64,000 nucleotides of DNA from positions 372,001 through 436,000 of the IMG/VR virus record IMGVR_UViG_3300028558_000016; one strand, written 5' to 3'. Under the pieces are notes generated by a model. The model was not told where the DNA came from, searched no databases, and was given only the letters and a program-made list of their open reading frames with translations. Made by a program: the position numbers and the translations under genes. Shown here piece by piece: positions 14,605 to 45,973 of the stretch (position 1 is its first letter; each line of letters opens with the position of its first letter).

Positions 14605-14691
14605 GGGTAAGTTGCCGTAGTGGCCGAACGGTCCAGACTGTTAATCTGGTGAGAGCAATCTCCGTCGTGGGTTCGAATCCCACCTCGCCCT
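14605..14691 (+). tRNA. tRNA-Asn(GTT), long variable arm
   Basis: CCAGA-CTGTTAA-TCTGG; variable arm GAGAGCAATCTC. Confidence 0.8.
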
Positions 14692-14698
14692 CAACTTT

Positions 14699-15506: not shown

Positions 15507-15590
15507 TGTACAGTATGCAAATTGGCGAAGCGAACAGATTTTGGATCTGTTGGAGTAATCCCGCTGCAGGTTCGAGCCCTGCCTGTATAA
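15507..15590 (+). tRNA. tRNA-Gln(TTG), long variable arm
   Basis: ACAGA-TTTTGGA-TCTGT; TGTACAG/CTGTATA. Confidence 0.78.
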
Positions 15591-15604
15591 CTAAAATTAA
15601 AAAC

Positions 15605-19398: not shown

Positions 19399-19413
19399 CT
19401 GCTCCCACTTTCT
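19386..19413. terminator. hairpin between convergent genes
   Basis: GGGAGCA-TAAC-TGCTCCC followed by T-rich tail. Confidence 0.5.
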
Positions 19414-19601
19414 TATTTAACTGTAGATGTTGCAACAACTGTAGGAGTTGCAATCACTGAAGCAGCTTCAACTGCTTTACAAGTATCAACACACGCTTTC
19501 GTTGTGTCACAAACTTCATTAACAACTTCAACTTCCGTTTTAGGAGTTCCACATGCAGCAAACATCGTCGTTGCAATAATTAAAAGTACAATCTTTTTCA
19601 T
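19413..19601 (-). CDS. small lipoprotein
   Basis: MKKIVLLIIATTMFAAC lipobox. Confidence 0.7.
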   Translation of the reverse strand: MKKIVLLIIATTMFAACGTPKTEVEVVNEVCDTTKACVDTCKAVEAASVIATPTVVATSTVK

Positions 19602-19716
19602 AGATTTTGTTGGGTTTTTAGTTTAGTTCCATATTAAACCGGGTCACGGTCAGGCTATATATAAATCACTGAGAAGTTAGTTTCAATCGATATATACAGC
19701 ACCACAATCATTTCCA

Positions 19717-19914
19717 TTGAAGCCAAAATTTAAAATCGGACAAACCATTTATTACATGTATCTCAATTGGATATGCAAATCTAAAGTGAAAAATCATTAT
19801 GAAAAAGATGGGAAGATCTTTTATTCTGATGACAGAAATGATGAAATATTAGAAAAATTCGTATTTGATAATAAGCCCGAACTGATTGATTTTCATATAA
19901 ATAGAACAAAATAA
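19717..19914 (+). CDS. hypothetical protein
   Basis: ORF track (KFKIGQ start). Confidence 0.55.
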   Translation: MKPKFKIGQTIYYMYLNWICKSKVKNHYEKDGKIFYSDDRNDEILEKFVFDNKPELIDFHINRTK

Positions 19915-19919
19915 ATAAA

Positions 19920-19960
19920 TAATTTTTCTGGTTTAAAAATAAGTGCCTATATTTGTATTC
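19920..19960 (+). promoter_or_regulatory. conserved operon promoter block
   Basis: TTTTTCTGGTTTAAAAATAAGTGCCTATATTTG. Confidence 0.6.
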
Positions 19961-19978
19961 AAGTTGAAAATCTTTAAG

Positions 19979-20032
19979 GGTTGCATTCAGCATAACAAAT
20001 CATCTACAAAATGAAACCAAAAGCAATCTGAA
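19979..20032 (+). ncRNA. CAGCA-motif structured element, copy A
   Basis: GGTTGC-ATTCAGCATAACAAA...GCAATC-TGAA. Confidence 0.55.
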
Positions 20033-20087
20033 GAATTTCAATGAAACAAAAAAGAAAAAAGATATATAACATAAGATATTAAAAAAA

Positions 20088-20142
20088 GGATGCGTTCAGC
20101 ATAACAAACTTACAATTGAAAAGTAAACCAAGGCATCCTGAA
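20088..20142 (+). ncRNA. CAGCA-motif structured element, copy B
   Basis: GGATGC-GTTCAGCATAACAAA...GCATCC-TGAA. Confidence 0.55.
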
Positions 20143-20155
20143 AAATTTTAAAGAA

Positions 20156-20248
20156 ATGAAAAAAGTAAATAACATAATCCCGCAGTTTCAGTTTGTGGTG
20201 CCGTTTAGCGGTTCCAACGGGCGTGTTATGTACTTTGACGATTTGTAA
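20156..20248 (+). CDS. attenuator leader peptide, Pro/Phe/Val-rich (30 aa)
   Basis: MKKVNNIIPQFQFVVPFSGSNGRVMYFDDL*. Confidence 0.8.
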   Translation: MKKVNNIIPQFQFVVPFSGSNGRVMYFDDL

Positions 20249-20298
20249 AAGAAAACGTTAGACAACAGAAAGCCCGGTGGAAACATCGGGCTTTTTTT
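20218..20298 (+). terminator. attenuator: antiterminator and intrinsic terminator
   Basis: CGGGC(20218-22) can pair GCCCG in the 5' arm of AAAGCCCGGTG-GAAA-CATCGGGCTTT-TTTT. Confidence 0.8.
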
Positions 20299-20311
20299 AT
20301 TTGCAAAATTT

Positions 20312-20384
20312 CGGGGTGTAGCGCAGTTGGTAGCGCGCGTGGTTTGGGGCCATGAGGTCGTCGGTTCGAGCCCGGCTACCCCGA
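20312..20384 (+). tRNA. tRNA-Pro(TGG)
   Basis: CGTGG-TTTGGGG-CCATG; CGGGGTG/TACCCCG. Confidence 0.9.
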
Positions 20385-20511
20385 CAGAAAAAGTCCTGTG
20401 ATTGACAAGAGTGTGTAAACCTTACAGGAAACGCACGGCTCCGCAGAGGAGTTAGAACTGGAATTGAGGGATACCAGATTGTTGATCGAATGGAAAATTG
20501 TTCTTTGAAAT

Positions 20512-20585
20512 GTGGGAGTAGCTGAGTTGGTTCAAGCGCCAGACTGAAAATCTGGAGTAGATCGGTTCGAGACCGATGTCTCACA
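20512..20585 (+). tRNA. tRNA-Phe(GAA)
   Basis: CCAGA-CTGAAAA-TCTGG. Confidence 0.88.
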
Positions 20586-20633
20586 CGAGTTTTGTTTTTC
20601 CAAGGTTTTGTTTTTCACAAATCAAAACCACCA

Positions 20634-20706
20634 CGAGGTGTGGCGAAGTTGGTATCGCGCCTGGTTTGGGACCAGGAGATCGCAGGTTCGAGCCCTGTCA
20701 CCTCGA
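20634..20706 (+). tRNA. tRNA-Pro(TGG)
   Basis: CCTGG-TTTGGGA-CCAGG; CGAGGTG/CACCTCG. Confidence 0.92.
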
Positions 20707-20717
20707 CAAATGGAAAT

Positions 20718-20790
20718 GTGGATGTAGCTCAGTTGGTAGAGCACTGCCCTGAAGAGGCAGGTGTCGGGGGTTCGAATCCCTCCATCCACA
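20718..20790 (+). tRNA. tRNA-Phe(GAA)
   Basis: CTGCC-CTGAAGA-GGCAG; GTGGATG/CATCCAC. Confidence 0.92.
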
Positions 20791-20796
20791 CGGCGC

Positions 20797-21030
20797 TGTC
20801 CCATGAGGGACTTTTCGTTGAGTATCTGCGGTTGAAATACCGATACAGTCAGACGTGACTTCAAGATGAAACTAAACAGAAAAATGGAAACACTACGGTA
20901 AAAGTCCGGGAGGCAGCGGCAGAATTAAATAGGAAACACCAACAACAGACTAAAAGTTGTTTTGTACGAAGCCCGCTTAAGAAGCGTCGTAGCAATGTCA
21001 AGGTGAGTTACAAAAGAGTCCGTGGGGACA
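20797..21030 (+). ncRNA. candidate structured ncRNA (about 235 nt)
   Basis: ends pair: TGTCCCATG-AGGGACTTTT / AAGAGTCC-GTGGGGACA; internal hairpins; no credible ORF. Confidence 0.5.
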
Positions 21031-21055
21031 CAAAAAACTTTTCCTATTTTAAAAT

Positions 21056-21130
21056 TGACGCATAGCTCAGTTGGTTCAGAGCATCTGCCTTACAAGCAGA
21101 GGGTCGGGGGTTCGAATCCCTCTGCGTCAA
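21056..21130 (+). tRNA. tRNA-Val(TAC)
   Basis: TCTGC-CTTACAA-GCAGA. Confidence 0.92.
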
Positions 21131-21131
21131 C

Positions 21132-21449
21132 ATGGAAAAGAAATTACAGGACAGCTTGGATGCCTTTAAAAATTTAATGGATAACATGTCTGAGGAAGAA
21201 TTAGCAGAAATAAAAGCAAAGTATTTCACAGAAGATGAAATACCAGAAGGCTGGGTTGACATTGAAGAACATTTGCCAATGGTTACATGTCAAGATTTTC
21301 TCGACAACGATGCAATAGTGAAATTCATCAAGGTCAAGGATAAAGACGGAAATATTTTTGATGATCAAGTTGGAGACCATCACATGTGGTACTACAGAGC
21401 AAAGGAAGCTGGAATAACACATTGGTGGAATGAAGTTGAAGAAGAATAA
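21132..21449 (+). CDS. hypothetical protein
   Basis: ORF track; W..I...LP...ITHW pattern. Confidence 0.65.
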   Translation: MEKKLQDSLDAFKNLMDNMSEEELAEIKAKYFTEDEIPEGWVDIEEHLPMVTCQDFLDNDAIVKFIKVKDKDGNIFDDQVGDHHMWYYRAKEAGITHWWNEVEEE

Positions 21450-21454
21450 AACAT

Positions 21455-21530
21455 TGCCCTATCGCTTAGTTGGTTTTAAAGCGTCTCGCTTACAACGAGA
21501 AGATCATCGGTTCGACTCCGGTTAGGGCAA
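21455..21530 (+). tRNA. tRNA-Val(TAC)
   Basis: TCTCG-CTTACAA-CGAGA; TGCCCTA/TAGGGCA. Confidence 0.9.
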
Positions 21531-21531
21531 C

Positions 21532-21789
21532 ATGAAAGATGAAAGTAAAATAACAACTCAGCAATTCAAATTTATTTCTGAATTGCTTTGGGGTGGAGTT
21601 CCCGTTGACCGGGTACAAGCTGAAGAGTCTGCGATGTTCAAAGCGAACGCGCCAAAAATATTAGAGGAATATCCTCTATTGGATAAATCATTTTTTGAAA
21701 AACATAGTAAAAACAAAGGTTATGAAATTGTCAAAAGTAAAAATATACAAGATGAACAAGGTAGGCAAGGAGAAATTGTCGACGGCTGA
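21532..21789 (+). CDS. hypothetical protein
   Basis: ORF track. Confidence 0.5.
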   Translation: MKDESKITTQQFKFISELLWGGVPVDRVQAEESAMFKANAPKILEEYPLLDKSFFEKHSKNKGYEIVKSKNIQDEQGRQGEIVDG

Positions 21790-22852
21790 TTTATTGGAAA
21801 GAACCGGCTACATAAAACAAGTCTCATCTGGATTGTTCGTTCAGATGCACTTTATGAAGTTGGTGATGAATAACATCGAAAAGATCGTTAGAGAAGAACT
21901 AAACAAAATAAGCGCCTTGGAAATTGGATTGAACCAGTTACAAGGCGCTGAAGTTTGGAAGCAAACCGGTCGCTATAATGATTATGGCGCTGAGATGTTC
22001 AAGCTCAAGGATCGTTCAGATAAGGAGATGGTGTTCACAGGAACAAACGAAGAACTCGTGACTGTTGTTGCAAGAGAATATGTGGAGTCATATAGAGATT
22101 TGTCTTTCACATTCTATCAGATAAACAATAAGTTCAGAGATGAAATTCGCTGTAACACAGGTCTGATTAGATGTAAAGAGTTTCTCATGATGGATGCATA
22201 TTCATTTCATGTTAACAAAGAAGATCTCGAAATTAGATATAATGAAATAAGAAATTGTTATATTGCCATATTCGATCGACTCAAACTGAAATACAGAATT
22301 GAAACTGCAGATTCAGGAGAGATTGGCGGATCTGTTTCAGAGGAATTCATAGTTGAAACAAGTGATGGAGATATTGAGATAGGACACATTTTCCAATTAG
22401 ACACAAAATACTCGTCCAAGCTTGAAGCACAATTCATAGATGAAAAAGGCGAAAAGCAGGACATAGTGATGGGATGTTATGGAATAGGAATTTCTCGATT
22501 GGCCCAGGTTCTTGCAGACATTAACAGAGATGGAAATAATCTCAATTGGTCAAGAGAACTTGCAGCATACAGTCATGCAATCATTGTGGCAGATGTGAGG
22601 AACGAAGAACAAATGAGGATTGCTGAAAAGATATACGATGAATTGAAAAGAAAAAAGAAGAACGTATATCTCGATGACAGAAATCTTCGTGTTGGCGAAA
22701 AGCTTACCGAAGCTGACATCCTTGGTTCTGCGAATAAAATTTTAATAGGTAAAAATATAAGTGAAAATAATTTTGAGGTGAAGAAAAATTCAAACGATGC
22801 ATGGGAAAAAATGTCCATGGAAAGCTTGGATTACTTCTTGGAACTTCAGTAA
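21722..22852 (+). CDS. proS: prolyl-tRNA synthetase lacking the INS editing domain
   Basis: WKQTGRY, TNEE, KFRDEIR, EFLMMDAYSF, EIGHIFQL, MGCYGIGISR, anticodon-binding domain. Confidence 0.93.
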   Translation: MKLSKVKIYKMNKVGKEKLSTADLLERTGYIKQVSSGLFVQMHFMKLVMNNIEKIVREELNKISALEIGLNQLQGAEVWKQTGRYNDYGAEMFKLKDRSDKEMVFTGTNEELVTVVAREYVESYRDLSFTFYQINNKFRDEIRCNTGLIRCKEFLMMDAYSFHVNKEDLEIRYNEIRNCYIAIFDRLKLKYRIETADSGEIGGSVSEEFIVETSDGDIEIGHIFQLDTKYSSKLEAQFIDEKGEKQDIVMGCYGIGISRLAQVLADINRDGNNLNWSRELAAYSHAIIVADVRNEEQMRIAEKIYDELKRKKKNVYLDDRNLRVGEKLTEADILGSANKILIGKNISENNFEVKKNSNDAWEKMSMESLDYFLELQ

Positions 22853-22864
22853 AAAGTAGAAATA

Positions 22865-23404
22865 ATGAAAGCAGTTTATATTGGCGAATACGTCAAAGAA
22901 AAAATGTTCGATAGGTTATTGAACGAAGTGGCCTGGGCCAATAAGGAAGCTCCAAGAGACGAATGCTTTATGGCATTGGAATCTTTGGAATATACTTATG
23001 GAAAAGGATTCACAAGAACGTACACTTCTTTAGAAATGCACGTTGAAGTGTTGGGCATCATGAAAAAGATGAACGACGAAATGGGAACCGAGTATAACGT
23101 TTGCTTCTTGAATTATTACAAGAGCGAAAAAGAACACTTAGGTTGGCATGCAGATGATTCTCCTGAAATGGATGAGACACACCCAATAGGTGTTGTATCA
23201 TTTGGAGCTGAGAGATACATTTGGACGAAAAATAAGGACTACAGGGGAAACATTCCTGATGAAGATAAGTATTTATTAGGGGATGGTTCTTTGTTTATCA
23301 TGCCTGCAGGTTTCCAAAAGGATAACTTGCACAAGATACCAAAGAATGACAAACCTTGTGGAGGAAGAATTAGTTTAACATTTAGAAAATTCATAAACAA
23401 ATGA
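22865..23404 (+). CDS. AlkB-family 2OG-Fe(II) dioxygenase
   Basis: NYY...GWHADD...H.IPK...RISLTFR. Confidence 0.9.
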   Translation: MKAVYIGEYVKEKMFDRLLNEVAWANKEAPRDECFMALESLEYTYGKGFTRTYTSLEMHVEVLGIMKKMNDEMGTEYNVCFLNYYKSEKEHLGWHADDSPEMDETHPIGVVSFGAERYIWTKNKDYRGNIPDEDKYLLGDGSLFIMPAGFQKDNLHKIPKNDKPCGGRISLTFRKFINK

Positions 23405-24045
23405 GAAGATTTAAAATAAAACAAACAGAAGACCAGCGGGTCTATTACACGTCGGACACCCATTATGCGCACGCGAATATGTGTCGCGGAGTTTCGCAAT
23501 GGGGCGACCTGGATAACAGCACGAGGAACTTCAAAACTCTAATAGAGATGAACAACGAACTTGTGAATGCGATCAATAGAACCGTTAGGCCCAAAGACAT
23601 ACTCTTCCATTGTGGAGACTGGTCGTTTGGAAACGTGAGCAACGTTGCGGAGTTCAGGAGAAGAATACATTGCGAGAATGTGCACATCATATACGGAAAC
23701 CATGATGATCACATAGAAGACGATGAGACCCTACATGGGCATTTCTCTTCTGTACAACATTACAAGGAATTGGCAATCGATGGAGATATGCTTTGCTTGT
23801 TTCACTACAAGCAGACTATATGGAATAAAAGTCATCGTGATGCTTATCACTTGTATGGTCACTCGCACGCAGGTGCTGAACACATGGTTAACGGAAGATC
23901 CATGGATGTTGGAGTTGACAACGCTTACAAGTTGCTTGGAGAATACAGACCTTTTTCTCACGAGGAAGTTTTGTACTTCTTGAAAGGAAGAAAACAGAAA
24001 GCCATAGATCACCATGGCGCTAAAGGTACTGAGTCACACAAATGA
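23401..24045 (+). CDS. calcineurin-like metallophosphoesterase
   Basis: SDTH, GD, GNHD, GHSH. Confidence 0.9.
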   Translation: MRRFKIKQTEDQRVYYTSDTHYAHANMCRGVSQWGDLDNSTRNFKTLIEMNNELVNAINRTVRPKDILFHCGDWSFGNVSNVAEFRRRIHCENVHIIYGNHDDHIEDDETLHGHFSSVQHYKELAIDGDMLCLFHYKQTIWNKSHRDAYHLYGHSHAGAEHMVNGRSMDVGVDNAYKLLGEYRPFSHEEVLYFLKGRKQKAIDHHGAKGTESHK

Positions 24046-24665
24046 AACAGTATCCGTCCATATCCCATTATGATGATTCGATGATCGGAACACCGATGCT
24101 CGCATTCAACAAGATTGACGGAAGCAATCTGCGGTTTGAGTGGAGCAAGAAGAAGGGATGGAATAAATTCGGAACAAGAAGAACCATACTAAATGAAAAA
24201 GATCCACTCTACATCGGAGTGGATCTTTTCTTATATAAATATGCTAACAAGCTTGAGGAGATATTCAAGGACGATAAAGATTTCAGAGGAATAAGAGAAG
24301 TTGTTGTATTCTGTGAGTTCTTTGGGCCAAACAGCTTTTATGGACAGCATGATTTCATTGACATGGATGTCGTCTTGTTGGACGTCAATCCAATGACAAA
24401 GGGATTCATAAATCCAAGAGAGTTCGTAAAGAAGTTTGGAAAGCTTGGAATTCCTGAAATAGTTTTTGACGGAATATTAACGGCTGAGATGGTTGATGAG
24501 ATCAGAAATTCTGATTTAAAAGAAGGTGTGGTGTGCAAGTGGAACAACAACAGACATCTGCATACGGCAAAGATCAAAACTTATAAATGGCTCAATGAAT
24601 TAAAAGCAAGATATGGGCAGGAAGCATTGGACGAAGAATTTGGAAACATTAAATTAATATCATGA
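24042..24665 (+). CDS. RNA ligase-like nucleotidyltransferase
   Basis: KIDGSN motif I, EFFG, EGVV, KIK. Confidence 0.75.
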   Translation: MKQYPSISHYDDSMIGTPMLAFNKIDGSNLRFEWSKKKGWNKFGTRRTILNEKDPLYIGVDLFLYKYANKLEEIFKDDKDFRGIREVVVFCEFFGPNSFYGQHDFIDMDVVLLDVNPMTKGFINPREFVKKFGKLGIPEIVFDGILTAEMVDEIRNSDLKEGVVCKWNNNRHLHTAKIKTYKWLNELKARYGQEALDEEFGNIKLIS

Positions 24666-25003
24666 CAAAAACTACAAAGAAGGTTAAATCAAAAACCAAA
24701 AAGAAAGCAACGAGAACTTTAAAATCTCATCCATTGGAAAAGAAGTCAGTTGTTAAGAAAGTGGAAAAAGTGATGAAAGATATAAAGAATGGATTGAAGG
24801 TAGGAGGAAAGATTGACATGGCATTTCACGGAGCTGGAGTCACCTCGCACGAAAATAAAACAATCGCAAATTACGATGACAATTTCATCTGGATTGATTG
24901 CGAGAACACAGAAGGTGAATTTTATAAGTTCAACAGAAAGACTGGTAAATGCGTCAATGACAATACATTCGGAGGTTTCTCGAGAACAATAAAACCTCAA
25001 TAA
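24662..25003 (+). CDS. hypothetical protein
   Basis: ORF track. Confidence 0.6.
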   Translation: MTKTTKKVKSKTKKKATRTLKSHPLEKKSVVKKVEKVMKDIKNGLKVGGKIDMAFHGAGVTSHENKTIANYDDNFIWIDCENTEGEFYKFNRKTGKCVNDNTFGGFSRTIKPQ

Positions 25004-25021
25004 TTTTGCGTATATTGCACT

Positions 25022-25188
25022 TGTCTCATTGAAAGATAGCACAACGTGGGAGCGGGCTTTAAAAAGCTCCTTTTCAGAAACGATCCATAAATTAGTGCGT
25101 CAATAGCAAGCCAATAAAGATTCGGATGCATGGACCGAAAGATTGGAGGTGGGGTGGAGAATCGGGAATCCCCCTTTCAATGAAGACA
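25022..25188 (+). ncRNA. candidate small RNA with long closing stem
   Basis: TGTCTCATTGAAAG/CTTTCAATGAAGACA; TATATTG promoter-like box immediately upstream. Confidence 0.5.
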
Positions 25189-25191
25189 CAA

Positions 25192-25265
25192 GACTGCGTA
25201 GCTCAGTTGGTTAGAGTGCTTCCTTGACATGGAAGAGGTCAGCGGTTCGAATCCGCTCGTGGTCA
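25192..25265 (+). tRNA. tRNA-Val(GAC)
   Basis: CTTCC-TTGACAT-GGAAG. Confidence 0.9.
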
Positions 25266-25279
25266 CTAAAATAAAAATA

Positions 25280-25741
25280 ATGTTTTGGTTTAATTTCGCT
25301 TTAACAGCATGGTTTACGTTGGTGCTCATCAACGCTTTATTTATTTTCGATGTTGACATCCTTTTCAAGTTTGTCTGGTCAGACAATCACGGGTTCATCC
25401 CCATAAGCAAAATAAGTGGAAAATTTGGACAAGGAATGATTGGACTTACCAATGAATATAAAGATTCAAAATACAGACTCAAACCATATTTAAGAATTCG
25501 TTGTAAACAAAGATATTATAGAGCAATAGAAAAGAGCAATAAGGATGAAATACTTATTATAAATACAATAGCTGGAAGAAAGGAATACAAAGGATATTCT
25601 GAATTATGGAAAGATTCTTCTTTTAAGGAAGCAAGTCACTCCGAGAGAATAGAAACATCTTATATAAATCCAAACTTTATTCAATTTACATTAACTTGGC
25701 CCAAATGGGAGGAAGATAAAACTCCTACTTTAGAAGAATAA
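25280..25741 (+). CDS. membrane-anchored hypothetical protein
   Basis: hydrophobic N-terminus; start placed after the tRNA. Confidence 0.6.
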   Translation: MFWFNFALTAWFTLVLINALFIFDVDILFKFVWSDNHGFIPISKISGKFGQGMIGLTNEYKDSKYRLKPYLRIRCKQRYYRAIEKSNKDEILIINTIAGRKEYKGYSELWKDSSFKEASHSERIETSYINPNFIQFTLTWPKWEEDKTPTLEE

Positions 25742-25836
25742 CGAATATTTTTCATTTTTGTTAACGAGATGGTGCTAATAACACCATTTTTATTTTATGA
25801 GAAAATTGATTATATTTGTAATAATGTAAATCTGAT

Positions 25837-26577
25837 ATGAGAGTCTTCATTCCAAAAGGTAAAAATGGTTTATTCATTTCTAATGAAATAATAACGGAAT
25901 GCACCTATGCAGCATTCTTTGGTTTTTCCACAATGGGATGGGAAGTGGAATTTTACGAAGGAGATCCTCCAACAGGTTTATCAAGAGATGACGTTGTCAT
26001 CGGTTGGATAACAGGAGTTAAGATGGCAGTTAAGAATTTAGGAATTGAACCTCCAACGGAAATAGATTATCCCGAAGAACTCAATGAATACCTTGGAAGA
26101 AAAATATGGCAGAGCAATCTCCATAAAGTTTATACAGATGATTCAATGTGGCCAGTGTTCGTTAAACCTGTAAAAGGAAAACAATTTGATGGAAAACTTG
26201 TAACAAGCCTAAAGGATTTAGTTGGCCTTGGTTCACAGGAAGACCGAAAGATTTGGTGTTCTGAACCTATTAAGTTTATTTCCGAGTGGAGATGCTTTGT
26301 ACGATATGGAAAAATGATCGACAGCAAAAACTACAAAGGTGATTTTAAAGTTCAACCAAACTTTCACATTATTGAAGCTTGCATAAAAGATTACGTTAGC
26401 CAGCCGGTAGCATTCACCATAGATTTTGGAGTTACCGATGATGGAAAAACTCTATTAATAGAAGTAAATGATGGTTATGCTTTCGGTACTTATGGATTAT
26501 CTCCATTAAACACTGCAAAAATGCTATCTGCTCGTTGGAGTGAGATGGTAGGAATTCCTGACCCTTGTCAATTTTAA
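25837..26577 (+). CDS. ATP-grasp domain protein (DUF4343/R2K-like)
   Basis: FVKP, SEWRCFV, IDFG, LIEVNDG. Confidence 0.8.
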   Translation: MRVFIPKGKNGLFISNEIITECTYAAFFGFSTMGWEVEFYEGDPPTGLSRDDVVIGWITGVKMAVKNLGIEPPTEIDYPEELNEYLGRKIWQSNLHKVYTDDSMWPVFVKPVKGKQFDGKLVTSLKDLVGLGSQEDRKIWCSEPIKFISEWRCFVRYGKMIDSKNYKGDFKVQPNFHIIEACIKDYVSQPVAFTIDFGVTDDGKTLLIEVNDGYAFGTYGLSPLNTAKMLSARWSEMVGIPDPCQF

Positions 26578-26578
26578 T

Positions 26579-27184
26579 ATGAAAAACTGGAAGAAAGTAG
26601 AAATACCTGAATTGATGAAAGATCTTCAGGTGGACAGAAGAGGATTTCCTGCTCCGTTCATTGTGCTGCGTGACAAGAATAATGTTCCGCAATTCATCAT
26701 GAATGATGACACTAAAGTGGAACAGTGCATAGCAGAAGATCTATGTTCTATTTGTGGAAAGAAGATGCATGATGACAAGTGGATGATAGGTGGACCGATG
26801 TCTGCATTCCATCCACAAGGAGCTTATGTCGATGTTCCAGTCCACAAGGTATGTGGAGAATATGCATTACAGGTTTGTCCATATCTTGCTGTTTCAGTTT
26901 ATAATGGAAAACAAACTATGGATGACATTGATGCTGGAAAATTCAGTGTTGATGATGACAAAAGAATGATATTTATAAATCCAACACAAAGTCAAGATAG
27001 AGTTCCATTCTTTGTGTTCAGTAAGATAACAGGATTTGATGTGCAAAGAAGAGGATTAAATCGTTACATTAAACCAACAAGGCCATATCTGGAAATAGAA
27101 TTCTGGAATGATGGAGAGAAGATAAGTGAGGAAGAAGCTATAAGGTTGGCAAAGGAAAAGAATTCAATTAAGTCGAACCAATAA
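26579..27184 (+). CDS. hypothetical protein
   Basis: ORF track; CSIC...H..C...CPYL. Confidence 0.65.
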   Translation: MKNWKKVEIPELMKDLQVDRRGFPAPFIVLRDKNNVPQFIMNDDTKVEQCIAEDLCSICGKKMHDDKWMIGGPMSAFHPQGAYVDVPVHKVCGEYALQVCPYLAVSVYNGKQTMDDIDAGKFSVDDDKRMIFINPTQSQDRVPFFVFSKITGFDVQRRGLNRYIKPTRPYLEIEFWNDGEKISEEEAIRLAKEKNSIKSNQ

Positions 27185-27323
27185 CAACACCATGAGAAAT
27201 GAGCAAATGGAAACTAATCCTCTTCGTGAAGAGGGTATGGGCGAAGATCCGCCCAAAGAAGGAAGCTTGCAGGGAGTATGTTCCAGAGGATCACCTCGGA
27301 ATATAGCCCTGGAAACGGCCCAG

Positions 27324-27372
27324 AAATGGCCCGGGATTGTCTCATAGCAAGACTTCCGGGCCATTTTTATTT
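27324..27372 (+). terminator. intrinsic terminator
   Basis: AAATGGCCCGGGA...TTCCGGGCCATTTTT. Confidence 0.65.
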
Positions 27373-27420
27373 TAGGTATATTATTAGTATATTTGTACTG
27401 AAAATATAACTAAACCAACC

Positions 27421-27840
27421 ATGAACGAATCAGTATTACAATTAGAATCGGAAATCGCATCATACGTGAATACCGACAATAAGAGCAACTGTACAATCCA
27501 TTTTGAATATGGAACAGAAACAGAGAGCAAAGGAACATTCAACAATCCTGTGCATGTTGCTTCAGCTTTCACAGTGAATCCTGTTTCAAGAGAAACTTTT
27601 CTTTTGAAGCAAGAAGAAGGAAAAACCAAAGAAGCCGCTCTCAAAAAAATTCTTGAATATGTAAAGAATAAGCTTGGACAAAGCTCATTCACTGTACTGT
27701 GGATGAAAAAAGGAGATGCAAAAATGAATACATCTTATTTCTACTGCCACGATGTATTAGATGTTGTGGAAAAATTCTTTCATGGAAAGAATATTCCAGA
27801 TTACACAGTGCATGAAATAAGATTAAATCCAATTGCATAA
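27421..27840 (+). CDS. hypothetical protein
   Basis: ORF track; TATATTTG upstream. Confidence 0.65.
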   Translation: MNESVLQLESEIASYVNTDNKSNCTIHFEYGTETESKGTFNNPVHVASAFTVNPVSRETFLLKQEEGKTKEAALKKILEYVKNKLGQSSFTVLWMKKGDAKMNTSYFYCHDVLDVVEKFFHGKNIPDYTVHEIRLNPIA

Positions 27841-27842
27841 TT

Positions 27843-28124
27843 ATGGAAACAAAATTATGCATACATTGCGGACAGCCAATTCCTGAGGGACGTTTGAAAG
27901 CTCTCAAAGGAAAAACCGACACTTGCACACCGTGTAGCACGGTTGATAAAGTTGCAGGACATCCATTGATTACTGGAAAGACTGAATATTCAGCCATTGA
28001 AATAGTTTCTGCTGAGACTGCAAAAAGATTGGCTAAAGCGCAGGACAGAAAAGGATATGGAGTCGCTGAAGGAGTTAAGTTTGACTCAGATAAAAAAGGA
28101 GAATCTAACGGATACGGATTATAA
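27843..28124 (+). CDS. DksA/TraR C4-type zinc-finger protein
   Basis: CIHCGQPIPEGRLKAL...CTPC. Confidence 0.75.
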   Translation: METKLCIHCGQPIPEGRLKALKGKTDTCTPCSTVDKVAGHPLITGKTEYSAIEIVSAETAKRLAKAQDRKGYGVAEGVKFDSDKKGESNGYGL

Positions 28125-28126
28125 CT

Positions 28127-28285
28127 ATGGAACTAATACAAGCAGTAATAGCATTGATTGGTCTTGGAGCTTATATGGAAGCACACCACCTCAACAAGAA
28201 CAACATTAGGCATGATGAAAGGATTTGGTATTTCATATCTGCTGCATGCTTGGTGGGATTGCTAATAACATTTTTGATAAAGTAA
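28127..28285 (+). CDS. small membrane protein (52 aa)
   Basis: MELIQAVIALIGLG..., read manually. Confidence 0.5.
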   Translation: MELIQAVIALIGLGAYMEAHHLNKNNIRHDERIWYFISAACLVGLLITFLIK

Positions 28286-29028
28286 TGGAACTTAAAACGG
28301 AATATATCAATGAGCTTAAAGCGAAACTCCCGAAGGAAAGCGGAAGCAGATTGAATATTCCCCAAAGAGAAGAACTTTCAAAGGAAAAAATAAGCAACCT
28401 TGTCAAGGCCAAAGGTTATAAATCAATCATAAGCAAAAAGGCTCTTGAATTTTTCATGAACAGGTCTTTCTCTTATGAACTTAAAAATGGAGATCTTTTT
28501 ATAGTGAAGGTGGATGAGGTGAAGAAAACTTCTCGCTCAATAGATGTCATCACATCAAACTGTTTGATTTATTCGTTCAAAACAAAAGGTGGTACGATAT
28601 ATGCAACCAAGAAACAAAGTGGAAATTACTTTTGTTGGACCGCACATTTCTTTGATCGCTACATTGCAAGAACTAAATTGAACATGACGAGAAAGGAAGC
28701 CATCAAGCATTATTTTAAAACATACTTGATGAATGGAAGTATATGCGACATCGATAAGCTTGACAAAGGAGTATTCAGACAAATAAACAAAGAAGGAGTT
28801 GACCTCGCTGAAATACACTCATTCGATGAAACATCCAGCTTAGATATAGTTTTGTTTAAAACGTTCATCGATAATTCAATGCTAAACTCAGAACAATTGA
28901 GAGCATTTAAGAAAAGCATTTTAGATGTAAAACAAAATATTGATCTGCCTGGAATGCAGAATGAGAAGAAGCTATTAAAGAGATTAATGGAAGATGATGA
29001 ATTTCAAGAACTATTGAAAATAAAATGA
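28285..29028 (+). CDS. hypothetical protein
   Basis: HFFDRY motif; TAATG coupling. Confidence 0.65.
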   Translation: MELKTEYINELKAKLPKESGSRLNIPQREELSKEKISNLVKAKGYKSIISKKALEFFMNRSFSYELKNGDLFIVKVDEVKKTSRSIDVITSNCLIYSFKTKGGTIYATKKQSGNYFCWTAHFFDRYIARTKLNMTRKEAIKHYFKTYLMNGSICDIDKLDKGVFRQINKEGVDLAEIHSFDETSSLDIVLFKTFIDNSMLNSEQLRAFKKSILDVKQNIDLPGMQNEKKLLKRLMEDDEFQELLKIK

Positions 29029-29441
29029 AGAACAAGACATTAATAAAATACGCGAGAACCCTTTTGAAAGAATTGCTTGCTAAATGCTCTGAGCCGCAAC
29101 AGTTGTTATTTAAGAGAATGTACAATCATAAGAATTTGGAAGCGCCAATCAATGAAGCAGTTGATCAGATGGAACCCGATAAACTGGATTGGGCTGTGAC
29201 TCAGGTAGAAGAAACGATTAAAAAGAACAATAGATTTTTAACTTGCAAAAAAGATTTGTTTAAATCAACATACCAATCTAATGCTTTCATAGATGGAAAA
29301 ATATATGAAGTTTCCTTTGATAAGAACTACGAGGAAAATGAAAATGAAATTTGGATAAAAGATGAAACAGGCAGACCGTTCACATTCACGAAAGTAAATT
29401 CATTTGGAATGTATAAAGTCGAAGATTATTTTGAATTATGA
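29025..29441 (+). CDS. hypothetical protein
   Basis: ORF track. Confidence 0.6.
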   Translation: MKNKTLIKYARTLLKELLAKCSEPQQLLFKRMYNHKNLEAPINEAVDQMEPDKLDWAVTQVEETIKKNNRFLTCKKDLFKSTYQSNAFIDGKIYEVSFDKNYEENENEIWIKDETGRPFTFTKVNSFGMYKVEDYFEL

Positions 29442-30844
29442 GTTACGATAAATACATATCAACAACACTTCCATACGCGAACTCTGTTCCGCACATGGGT
29501 CATGCTCTTGAACTAATTCAAGGGGATGCGCTCAAGCATTTTTTCGAATCTATAAAGAATGAAAAAGTATTCTTCAATATAGGTGTTGACGAACATGGAT
29601 TAAAGGTCTATACAAAGGCACAAGAACTTGGAATTGACACCAAGCTTTATTTGAATGAACTGACGCATAAATGGCAGGACTTTTGTAAGTTGTTCCAAAT
29701 TGATTATGACAACTTCTATAGAACAACGAGTCTTGTTCACATAGCAAGAACCCAAAGATTTTGGACTAAGTGTCTCGAGAGAGGAGATCTTTACAAGAAG
29801 AAGTATTCTGGAAAATATTGCGCTGGATGTGAATCATTTAAAACTGAAGCAGATCTCGTAGATGGAAAATGCCCAGACCATAATATCGAACCCTCTATAA
29901 TAGAAGAAGAGAATTGGTTCTTTAGAATTTCTAAGCATAAAGGATTATTATATGGATGGTTGAAGAGCAATCCTGATTTTTTATCGCCAAGGTCTAAAAC
30001 TTCCGAACTTGAAAACATAATACTTCAATCTGAAGATATTTCAGTTTCTCGTTTAAAGGTAAATGTTCCATGGGGAGTTGGAGTTCCAAATGATGAAGAT
30101 CAAGTCATTTATGTTTGGTTTGAAGCTCTTCTTAATTATATCTTCGCTGTGGATGATTTTAATGATCAATACTTCATACAAATATGTGGTCCAGACAATT
30201 TAAGATTTCAGGGATCATTATTCCAAAATATTTTGATTTCTGCAAATATTCCAAACACCAAGAAATTATTGGTTCATGGAACTGTTCTCGATGCCGAAGG
30301 TAAAAAGATGTCCAAGTCACTTGGTAACGTGGTTGATCCAATTGATCAATTAAACAAATATGGATTGGATGCTGTAAGATATTACACGCTTGCAGGTTTA
30401 TCCACCTATGGTGATGGAGCGTGGTCTGAAAAGGATTTAATAAAAACCTACAATTCTGAATTGGCAGATACTTATGGAAATTTATTGGCAAGGGTTCTTC
30501 ATTTGATAGACACCAAGAATGTTGATGTAATTCCACCAACAGCAGAACATAAGAGACACGTTGATTCAATAGTGTATTCAGTTCACACCAATTGGGAATT
30601 CTATGAAATCCAAAAAGCAATAAAGGAAACTGGCTGGATAATCAATTTCGGAAATAAGTACATGAATGATGAAAAACCGTGGGAAAAAGATAAAGATTAC
30701 GTGCAAATTCTAAGCAATCTGTACTATTCTTTATGTGAAGCAAATAAGTTATATTTACCTGTTTTATCATCTAAAACGTGGTCACTGATAGAAGAAGCAT
30801 TGAAGATAAAAAAGAAAGTAATAATATTTCAGAAAATAGTATAA
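29438..30844 (+). CDS. metG: methionyl-tRNA synthetase
   Basis: TTLPYANSVPHMGH, GVDEHG, YVWFEALLNY, KMSKSLGN. Confidence 0.95.
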   Translation: MSYDKYISTTLPYANSVPHMGHALELIQGDALKHFFESIKNEKVFFNIGVDEHGLKVYTKAQELGIDTKLYLNELTHKWQDFCKLFQIDYDNFYRTTSLVHIARTQRFWTKCLERGDLYKKKYSGKYCAGCESFKTEADLVDGKCPDHNIEPSIIEEENWFFRISKHKGLLYGWLKSNPDFLSPRSKTSELENIILQSEDISVSRLKVNVPWGVGVPNDEDQVIYVWFEALLNYIFAVDDFNDQYFIQICGPDNLRFQGSLFQNILISANIPNTKKLLVHGTVLDAEGKKMSKSLGNVVDPIDQLNKYGLDAVRYYTLAGLSTYGDGAWSEKDLIKTYNSELADTYGNLLARVLHLIDTKNVDVIPPTAEHKRHVDSIVYSVHTNWEFYEIQKAIKETGWIINFGNKYMNDEKPWEKDKDYVQILSNLYYSLCEANKLYLPVLSSKTWSLIEEALKIKKKVIIFQKIV

Positions 30845-31386
30845 TGGCAAAAAAACAAAACAATATGGCAAACGCAGAAGAAACAGCGATCAAATGGGGA
30901 AAGTATTTAGGAATTCCATTTGTGGTAATTTTATTCCTTGCACTAATGTTCAGATTATTATGTGTAACATTCATCGATAATTATGAATTCGGTTATAAAT
31001 ATGATTATGCTACGGGCGAAATGAAATCGGTAAACAGGCAAGGTTATATTATTGCTGCGCCATGGGTGAGCATTCACACAATTGATCTAAGACCAACACA
31101 AGTTTGCATAAATGCAAATTCAAGAGTTCTCAATTGTAAGCTTGTACAATTCGATACAACTGGATGGAGAACATTTGTCGCATGGCATGGAAGAGACAAC
31201 TACGAAAATTCAACATATCACTCAGAAGGTGGAGGTTCATCTTCTGGATTAAATGGAATTTTGTTAAGCTATGCGTATGATGGTTCCGGAAAAGCTTATC
31301 CTTTTCTGAAGGTCATACGAGAATTAAAACCTGACGATCAACCTAAAGTTACTCAATCAATAACTCCAACAGATACTACTAAATAA
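30844..31386 (+). CDS. membrane protein, SPFH-like, paralog 1
   Basis: N-terminal TM segment; PW...IDLRPTQVCI. Confidence 0.55.
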   Translation: MAKKQNNMANAEETAIKWGKYLGIPFVVILFLALMFRLLCVTFIDNYEFGYKYDYATGEMKSVNRQGYIIAAPWVSIHTIDLRPTQVCINANSRVLNCKLVQFDTTGWRTFVAWHGRDNYENSTYHSEGGGSSSGLNGILLSYAYDGSGKAYPFLKVIRELKPDDQPKVTQSITPTDTTK

Positions 31387-41638: not shown

Positions 41639-41745
41639 GATTGCTTACAGCAAAACAAAATGGTTAAAGAATCACCGAAAGGTGGTTTTTTCGGTTCGAT
41701 CCCGAAGCTCTGAGATTACATCAATGAGTTTTAAGGCAATCTGAA
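41639..41745 (+). ncRNA. CAGCA-motif element enclosing a tRNA-like core, copy C
   Basis: GATTGC-TTACAGCAAAACAAA...TGGTTAAAG...GGTTCGATCCC...GCAATC-TGAA. Confidence 0.55.
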
Positions 41746-41766
41746 AGACATTAGAATAACAATACA

Positions 41767-41914: not shown

Positions 41915-41997
41915 ACGTCGGTGTCCGAGCGGTCAAAGGTAGCGGTCTCCAAAACCGCGGAGTTTCTCCATCGTGGGTTCGAATCCTACCCGGCGTG
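41915..41997 (+). tRNA. tRNA-Trp(CCA), long variable arm
   Basis: GCGGT-CTCCAAA-ACCGC; G73; GGAGTTTCTCC arm. Confidence 0.88.
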
Positions 41998-42018
41998 CAA
42001 AAATTAAAAGAAGAAAAC

Positions 42019-42373: not shown

Positions 42374-42463
42374 GGTGCAGGTATCCAAGGGGTTGAAGGG
42401 ACCAGGCTGTGGACCTGGTTGAAGCGAAAGCTGAACACGCGAGTTCGAATCTCGTCTTGCACC
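42374..42463 (+). tRNA. tRNA-His(GTG), long variable arm
   Basis: G-1:C73; CCAGG-CTGTGGA-CCTGG; AGCGAAAGCT arm. Confidence 0.85.
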
Positions 42464-42468
42464 CACAT

Positions 42469-45345: not shown

Positions 45346-45395
45346 CATTTTAAAAATATCGAAAATGAAATGGTTTAAGAAATTACAGGAAATAA

Positions 45396-45479
45396 CGGCA
45401 CGTACTCAGACCATCCTGATAAGATGGATAACTTGTAGCGGTGTTGCAAACGTGGGTTCAAATCCCTCCGTGCCGACCA
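45396..45479 (+). ncRNA. D-arm-less rearranged tRNA-like RNA, anticodon GAT (Ile)
   Basis: CGGCACG/CGTGCCG+ACCA; CCATC-CTGATAA-GATGG 8 nt after the acceptor strand. Confidence 0.65.
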
Positions 45480-45760
45480 TGAAAAATATGTTGTATAAAA
45501 CCGCAAGAAGGTCGTTGTCAAAAAAGACAAACAGACATTTGAGACAAACCACGTTTCTCTACGAGATGTGTGGAAATGATTTTCAAAAGCTGTTAAAGGT
45601 GGAAGAGAGATTGAAAAATTATTTTCTCTTTTATTGTCCAGGCGATCCTGAAGAAGTGGAAAAAGTTTTGGCATTGCCTGAAAAATTTTTATTGAACGAT
45701 AAGAAGTGGCAAGATGGATCAAAATATTTTTGCTTAGAAGAATTTTACGACGGAATGTAG
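45479..45760 (+). CDS. hypothetical protein
   Basis: MKNMLYKT...; stop TAG lies inside the next tRNA. Confidence 0.55.
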   Translation: MKNMLYKTARRSLSKKTNRHLRQTTFLYEMCGNDFQKLLKVEERLKNYFLFYCPGDPEEVEKVLALPEKFLLNDKKWQDGSKYFCLEEFYDGM

Positions 45761-45827: not shown

Positions 45828-45973
45828 ATGTCCTTAGCTCAGTGGTTAGAGTATTATGCTGATAAAAGGTTTTAGATCTTGTAATGGAAAAATATCACGG
45901 CTCATAACCGTGGTACCAAAACAAAAATTTAAAATGCACATAAGGGTCGGTGGTTCGAATCCATCAGGACATG
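45828..45973 (+). tRNA. tRNA (GAT) with about 73-nt insert carrying a nested CAT anticodon arm
   Basis: ATGTCCT/AGGACAT; TTATG-CTGATA[insert with CACGG-CTCATAA-CCGTG]A-CATAA. Confidence 0.65.

Follow-up and report, generated by a model that had tools for sequence, protein, structure and literature searches.

Background

Leader-peptide attenuators are known from the amino acid operons of enterobacteria, where they may be multivalent, as in thr (Thr and Ile) and ilvGMEDA (Leu, Val and Ile), and where trp, his, leu and pheA provide further examples; their theory is treated in PMC1183508. In these systems a short leader ORF carries clustered regulatory codons, regions 1:2, 2:3 and 3:4 form mutually exclusive hairpins, an intrinsic terminator precedes the first structural gene, and the position of the stalled ribosome decides which hairpin forms. 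The E. coli pheST operon, with its pheM leader, appears to apply this principle to an aminoacyl-tRNA synthetase (aaRS), although for a single amino acid, in a cell, and with no tRNA genes in the regulated unit. T-box riboswitches of Firmicutes serve a similar purpose and also choose between a terminator and an antiterminator, but sense uncharged tRNA by direct RNA-tRNA pairing without translation. In Bacteroidota, the Bacteroid-trp leader motif (RF01692), a predicted attenuator of trp biosynthesis genes, would make such a mechanism plausible in that phylum. It is largely unknown how phages control their own tRNA genes, which are usually regarded as constitutive codon-usage supplements or as spares against tRNA-cleaving defences.

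Here we describe a predicted attenuator in front of Pro, Phe and Val tRNA genes of a 482-kb phage. Its resemblance to the thr, ilv and pheST systems lies in the leader ORF and the alternative hairpins, while its products are tRNAs and an aaRS rather than biosynthetic enzymes, the element is viral, and its promoter context is Bacteroidota-like. Its stop codon lies only 20 nt from the terminator. It is not a member of the curated Rfam families Phe_leader (RF01859), Trp_leader (RF00513) or Thr_leader (RF00506), against which it scores 20.3, 17.7 and 15.5 bits, respectively, with cut-offs of 55, 41 and 55 (E 0.5-2.3). No T-box was found at the gathering score over the window, by which we mean the whole 64,000-nt stretch analysed, and neither a T-box nor anything resembling Bacteroid-trp was reported at E values up to 10 over positions 19900-20320. 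Our literature searches found no description of leader-peptide control of phage or cellular tRNA operons; a theta-ribozyme paper (PMC10879173) concerns tRNA-adjacent ribozymes, and the region upstream of E. coli K-12 pheV has no annotated leader and no room for a leader and terminator.

Organization of the Pro/Phe/Val operon

The window corresponds to bases 372001-436000 of a single-contig virus record of 482,156 bp (IMGVR_UViG_3300028558_000016), which has 36.8% GC and 55 tRNA genes and is found in rhizosphere and soil metagenomes. All parts of the operon described below are on the + strand. The leader ORF starts with ATG at 20156 and ends with TAA at 20246-20248, comprising 30 codons, of which codons 9-17 (20180-20206; CCG CAG TTT CAG TTT GTG GTG CCG TTT) read PQFQFVVPF, while GTA is codon 4. 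It is followed by an intrinsic terminator at 20268-20298, with a 12-bp GC-rich stem (20268-20279/20284-20295), a GAAA loop (20280-20283) and seven T (20292-20298), which folds at -19.1 kcal/mol and is the top terminator-like site in 19400-31000. Thirteen nt further downstream is a series of tRNA genes (20312-21531), Pro(UGG), Phe(GAA), Pro(UGG), Phe(GAA), Val(UAC) and Val(UAC), identified by ARAGORN and supported by Rfam tRNA hits of 51-74 bits. Long unannotated spacers lie between them (20386-20511, 20792-21055), and a 105-codon ORF without a Pfam match (21132-21449) separates the two Val genes; in contigs L190 and L191 of close relatives, an inserted gene and a structured stretch occupy the corresponding place.

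Next is a short (376 aa) class II prolyl-tRNA synthetase-type gene (21722-22852) with Pfam tRNA-synt_2b and HGTP_anticodon domains, the homologues of which are named prolyl-tRNA synthetase by their sources. The same transcription unit likely extends over 22865-25266, with genes for an AlkB-like 2OG-Fe(II) oxygenase, a metallophosphatase and an RNA ligase (the RNA ligase and phosphoesterase at 23401-24665) and tRNA-Val(GAC), as no strong + strand terminator was found before 25766, although co-transcription is only inferred. The presence of RNA ligase, phosphoesterase and AlkB-like genes might suggest a link to tRNA damage, which is speculative. Several tRNA genes in the window are over-long (84-146 nt; 14605-14692, 15507-15591, 41915-41998, 42375-42464, 45828-45973), suggesting short insertions or introns.

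Upstream of the leader, positions 19910-19955 contain a promoter-like box ending in CCTATATTTG, a -7 element (TAnnTTTG) of Bacteroidota type. The same near-identical box of about 40 nt precedes six tRNA operons (besides this locus, genome positions 123469, 320232, 386034, 413578 and 417142), and CCTATATTTG occurs six times on the + strand of the genome, each time at an operon start; promoter activity of the box is inferred. A UTR box, GAAACAAA...GATATATAA, at 20043-20070 is shared by all seven operon leaders (consensus GAAACAAA...RGRTATATAR), and together with GAAACAAA is found only upstream of the leaders, which it marks genome-wide. The two boxes are private to the seven tRNA operons, implying one regulon with a dedicated promoter class.

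The 5'UTR also harbors two copies of a hairpin-like element, copy A at 19978-20033, with a P1 stem, conserved UUCAGCAUAACAAA and a variable insert, and copy B at 20088-20145 (GGATGC...GCATCC). Other copies are at 41640-41750 in the window, on the genome minus strand near 7882 and 7710, and at positions 4128-4180 of L002, a contig of a related phage. The element consists of the P1 stem, conserved YWCAGCAWWACAAA, a variable insert, AAACCAAAAG, P1', then UGAA, and P1 covaries between copies. In one copy the insert is an intron-bearing tRNA-like sequence, and in another it holds a T-arm-like GGTTCGATCC. Copies occur only inside tRNA operons and have no Rfam match; the element may be a tRNA cassette or a processing signal.

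Leader composition mirrors tRNA content

We sought to determine whether the correspondence between leader codons and downstream tRNAs exceeds chance. Seven of the nine core codons are read by anticodons of this operon, and among 4152 small ORFs (15-60 codons) in the genome only 4, including this one, hold 7 or more such codons in 9 consecutive ones. Both Pro codons in the core are CCG, which is rare in this genome (3.9 per 1000), is read by the UGG anticodon, and also forms part of two helices. Moreover, while the original prediction counted four attenuators, we found seven such leaders genome-wide. Apart from three suppressor tRNA(CUA) genes and a neighbouring tRNA-Cys, the tRNA genes lie in or downstream of seven clusters, each preceded by a short ORF and a hairpin with a U-run. 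The leader core TTGTTTTTKTGKGK is followed by Thr/Gly/Lys/Met/Asn tRNAs, ADCADE by Asp/Cys/Glu/Ala, LSLSLSLSLSLS by Leu/Ser, NNNNQQQYQQNNY by Asn/Gln/Tyr, PQFQFVVPF by Pro/Phe/Val, HIHKHQIWH by Trp/His, and ITRIIRIRRR by Ile/Arg, together covering all 20 amino acids. When each leader was scored against the codons readable by each cluster's anticodons, the true assignment was the single best of 5040 permutations. Each operon in the window also carries cognate synthetase genes: TyrRS, a Glu/GlnRS-type gene and a GatB-like gene after the N/Q/Y leader, ProRS after the P/F/V leader, HisRS- and TrpRS-like genes after the W/H leader, and an ArgRS-like gene after the I/R leader.

The ProRS homologues define a clade of megaphage contigs of 290-780 kb, although searches of GenBank phages for near-identical DNA and for the ProRS protein found no relatives, a single-protein ProRS scan and a promoter-box pattern scan of viral contigs found nothing, and alignment-based scans of metagenome and genome contigs were swamped by bacterial ProRS. 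Two complete IMG/VR genomes, G001 (507,910 bp, 68 tRNA) and G002 (518,809 bp, 55 tRNA), have operons that are composed differently, yet each leader again mirrors its tRNAs, with SRSRSSRS before Ser/Arg, QQQQQQQ before four Gln, KKKKK before five Lys, IYIGYIAEGGYEAG before Glu/Tyr/Gly/Ile/Ala, and a long mixed leader before a 19-tRNA operon. The true assignment is the best of 720 in G001 and the best of 120 in G002. Where Pro tRNAs are grouped with Asp or Gln, as in G001 and in the related contigs L007 and L194, the leader becomes P/D/Q-rich. In addition, in a related 508-kb phage a V/N-rich leader (NSNNVVVVNRN; L088:8236-8346) and a terminator precede a class I aaRS gene with no tRNA genes between them, an aaRS-only version of the same switch. 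In all, 15 more leader-terminator sites were seen in related megaphages, 13 of which entered the tests on 20 attenuators described below.

Alternative RNA structures

The original prediction held that CGGGC in the leader (20218-20222) can invade the GCCCG arm (20272-20276) of the terminator, forming the shortest antiterminator of the four in the window. This pairing is real but is only half of the helix: UUCCA.CGGGC (20212-20222) pairs with GCCCG.UGGAA (20272-20282) to yield 10 bp, 5+5 around one A.G mismatch, consuming the GC core of the terminator 5' arm (20272-20279) and most of its loop. The duplex energy is -17.5 kcal/mol, in comparison with -10.6 for dinucleotide shuffles of the leader (z -3.24, p 0.01), the second strongest of the genome's seven, and the antiterminator is not clearly the shortest or weakest of the four in the window. 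The helix closes a spacer hairpin (20229-20267), which carries the stop codon in its loop and brings the two strands together. A third pairing joins the start of the ORF (region 1, 20162-20182; AAAGUA, AUAACAU, CCCG) to 20218-20236 within region 2 (20212-20236), with -23.9 vs -13.3 kcal/mol in shuffles (z -3.57).

The MFE of the full-length leader is always the terminator, so any switch must be kinetic; since the terminator wins almost always even when a ribosome is masked, such folds are a poor test, and we turned to truncated transcripts and shuffles. In the growing transcript, the 1:2 fold is the MFE at lengths up to 20272, the antiterminator from 20276 to 20288, and 1:2 plus terminator from 20292 onward, with estimated barriers of 9-11 kcal/mol, which is slow compared with transcribing about 20 nt. 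Without a ribosome, however, RNA truncated at the terminator loop prefers the antiterminator (-34.5) over the 1:2 fold (-26.6) by 7.9 kcal/mol, and the untranslated default therefore depends on an estimated refolding barrier of 10.9 kcal/mol, leaving the basal state uncertain. With a ribosome stalled on codons 9-15, region 1 is covered and the antiterminator forms; it still formed for stalls up to codon 16, although stalls at the last two core codons (P16, F17) would partly cover region 2. The footprint used (A site plus 13 nt) and the host's transcription-translation coupling are assumptions.

Over 20 attenuators, all antiterminator z-scores are negative (mean -2.49, Stouffer -11.1), and the 1:2 pairing is also enriched (Stouffer -7.5). 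The gap from stop codon to terminator arm is 20-36 nt in all 20, just beyond the reach of a terminating ribosome. Cognate codons concentrate where a stall would still permit the antiterminator, 209 inside and 33 outside against 160 and 168 for other codons (OR 6.65, p 1e-21), and the cognate run usually ends 0-3 codons before that boundary. It should be kept in mind that some of the 20 attenuators are homologous and not fully independent, and the combined p-values are therefore optimistic.

Only one true orthologue of this particular leader was recovered, in L002 (ProRS 82% identical; L002:4230-4325), so that covariation rests on two sequences. Contigs L001, L005 and L189-L192 of close relatives end before the leader, while L004, L006 and L193 have no tRNA genes in the stretch examined around ProRS, and four DNA sequencing runs carried an identical leader, yielding no natural variants. 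In L002, the leader core is PQFRVFVVPF, followed by Pro, Phe, Pro, Val and Val tRNAs, and copy B of the hairpin-like element is lacking, with the UTR box abutting the leader ATG. Its 9-bp antiterminator, UCU.CCGGGU with GCCCGG.GGA, is shifted but intact, the mismatch having moved by one position. A spacer hairpin of different sequence occupies the same place, with the stop codon in its loop, and the same three-state folding series appears.

Proposed mechanism and alternatives

The locus has the computable hallmarks of a ribosome-mediated transcription attenuator keyed to Pro, Phe and Val, as originally predicted, and we consider this the probable explanation with fairly high confidence, although function is inferred; no transcript or ribosome data exist, and no RNA run contained the locus, only tRNA-like words. 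In this model, transcription starts at the shared box (about 19960), and the leader is translated while RNA polymerase moves on. If Pro-, Phe- and Val-tRNA are plentiful, the ribosome runs to the stop codon at 20246, inside the spacer hairpin, region 2 re-pairs with region 1 behind it, and the 20268-20295 hairpin stops transcription at the U-run. If decoding of CCG, TTT or GTG is slow, the ribosome stalls on codons 9-15 and covers region 1, 20212-20222 stays free and pairs with 20272-20282 (region 3) once the latter emerges, and the terminator 3' arm is left without a partner, so that polymerase reads into the tRNA genes. New phage tRNAs and ProRS would then relieve the stall, closing a negative feedback loop. 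Translation of the leader, promoter use, the kinetics, a Bacteroidota host and the physiological signal, such as shortage of charged or intact tRNA after host shut-off or anticodon-nuclease defence, are all inferred.

A switch that reports general translation capacity, such as ribosome availability or host shut-off, with the amino acid bias being secondary, would also be served by the conserved stop-to-terminator gap and the 1:2/2:3/3:4 architecture, and the operons share one promoter box and one UTR box. It would not, however, need a leader composition that tracks each operon's tRNA set in three genomes and changes with operon content, or cognate codons placed exactly in the permissive zone, and we regard it as unlikely. 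Similarly, stalling might control processing or stability of the tRNA precursor, for example nuclease access near the hairpin, since the hairpin lies 13 nt from the first tRNA and is thus part of the RNase P substrate, and unexplained structured elements sit in the same 5'UTR; yet the hairpin is followed by seven U, the canonical intrinsic-terminator signature, in all 20 cases, and the competing pairing targets the 5' arm, as antiterminators do, and we regard this reading as unlikely as well.

Direct binding of tRNA by the leader RNA, with an incidental ORF, is brought to mind by the nature of the regulated genes and by UGGA in the antiterminator 3' strand, but appears very improbable given the lack of T-box or other riboswitch hits, even at E values up to 10, and of specifier-loop architecture, the conservation of an ATG-started ORF with a fixed distance from stop to terminator in 20 of 20, and the fact that multi-amino-acid leaders cannot be read by a single specifier. 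An equally remote possibility is a chance ORF next to an ordinary terminator ending the upstream operon (a GatB-like gene and a small ORF ending at 19914). Indeed, no terminator was found between the upstream gene end and 20268, and the hairpin may therefore also stop upstream read-through; however, a promoter-like box lies between the upstream stop codon and the leader, a comparable P/F/V window is expected in about 1 in 1000 small ORFs, and the pattern repeats at 7 of 7 operons and in other phages.

A broader hypothesis, which we consider somewhat more likely than not, is that this megaphage clade runs a codon-resolved homeostat for its whole translation kit, each operon being gated by a leader that samples exactly the amino acids whose tRNAs it encodes, so that the phage replaces or repairs only those tRNAs that become limiting during infection, for instance after host tRNA cleavage by anticodon nucleases. 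This would be the first case of tRNA genes under ribosome-mediated attenuation and the first of such attenuators in a virus, extending a mechanism known from amino acid biosynthesis to RNA genes and to Bacteroidota-type hosts. About 20 natural variants of one design offer ideal material for testing quantitative models of attenuation, and leader composition provides a signature that predicts operon content in uncultured megaphages.

The three suppressor tRNA(CUA) genes (window 2278-2351; genome 358020-358092 (-) and 368276-368349 (+)) have no leader-peptide attenuator; TAG occurs at about 0.9 per 1000 codons inside long TAA/TGA-delimited frames, suggesting partial amber recoding. Finally, just after the terminator of the fourth attenuator in the window, a sequence at 45395-45480 with a T-arm-like GGTTCAAATCC and a 3' CCA, called neither by ARAGORN nor by Rfam, may be a tRNA-like RNA.
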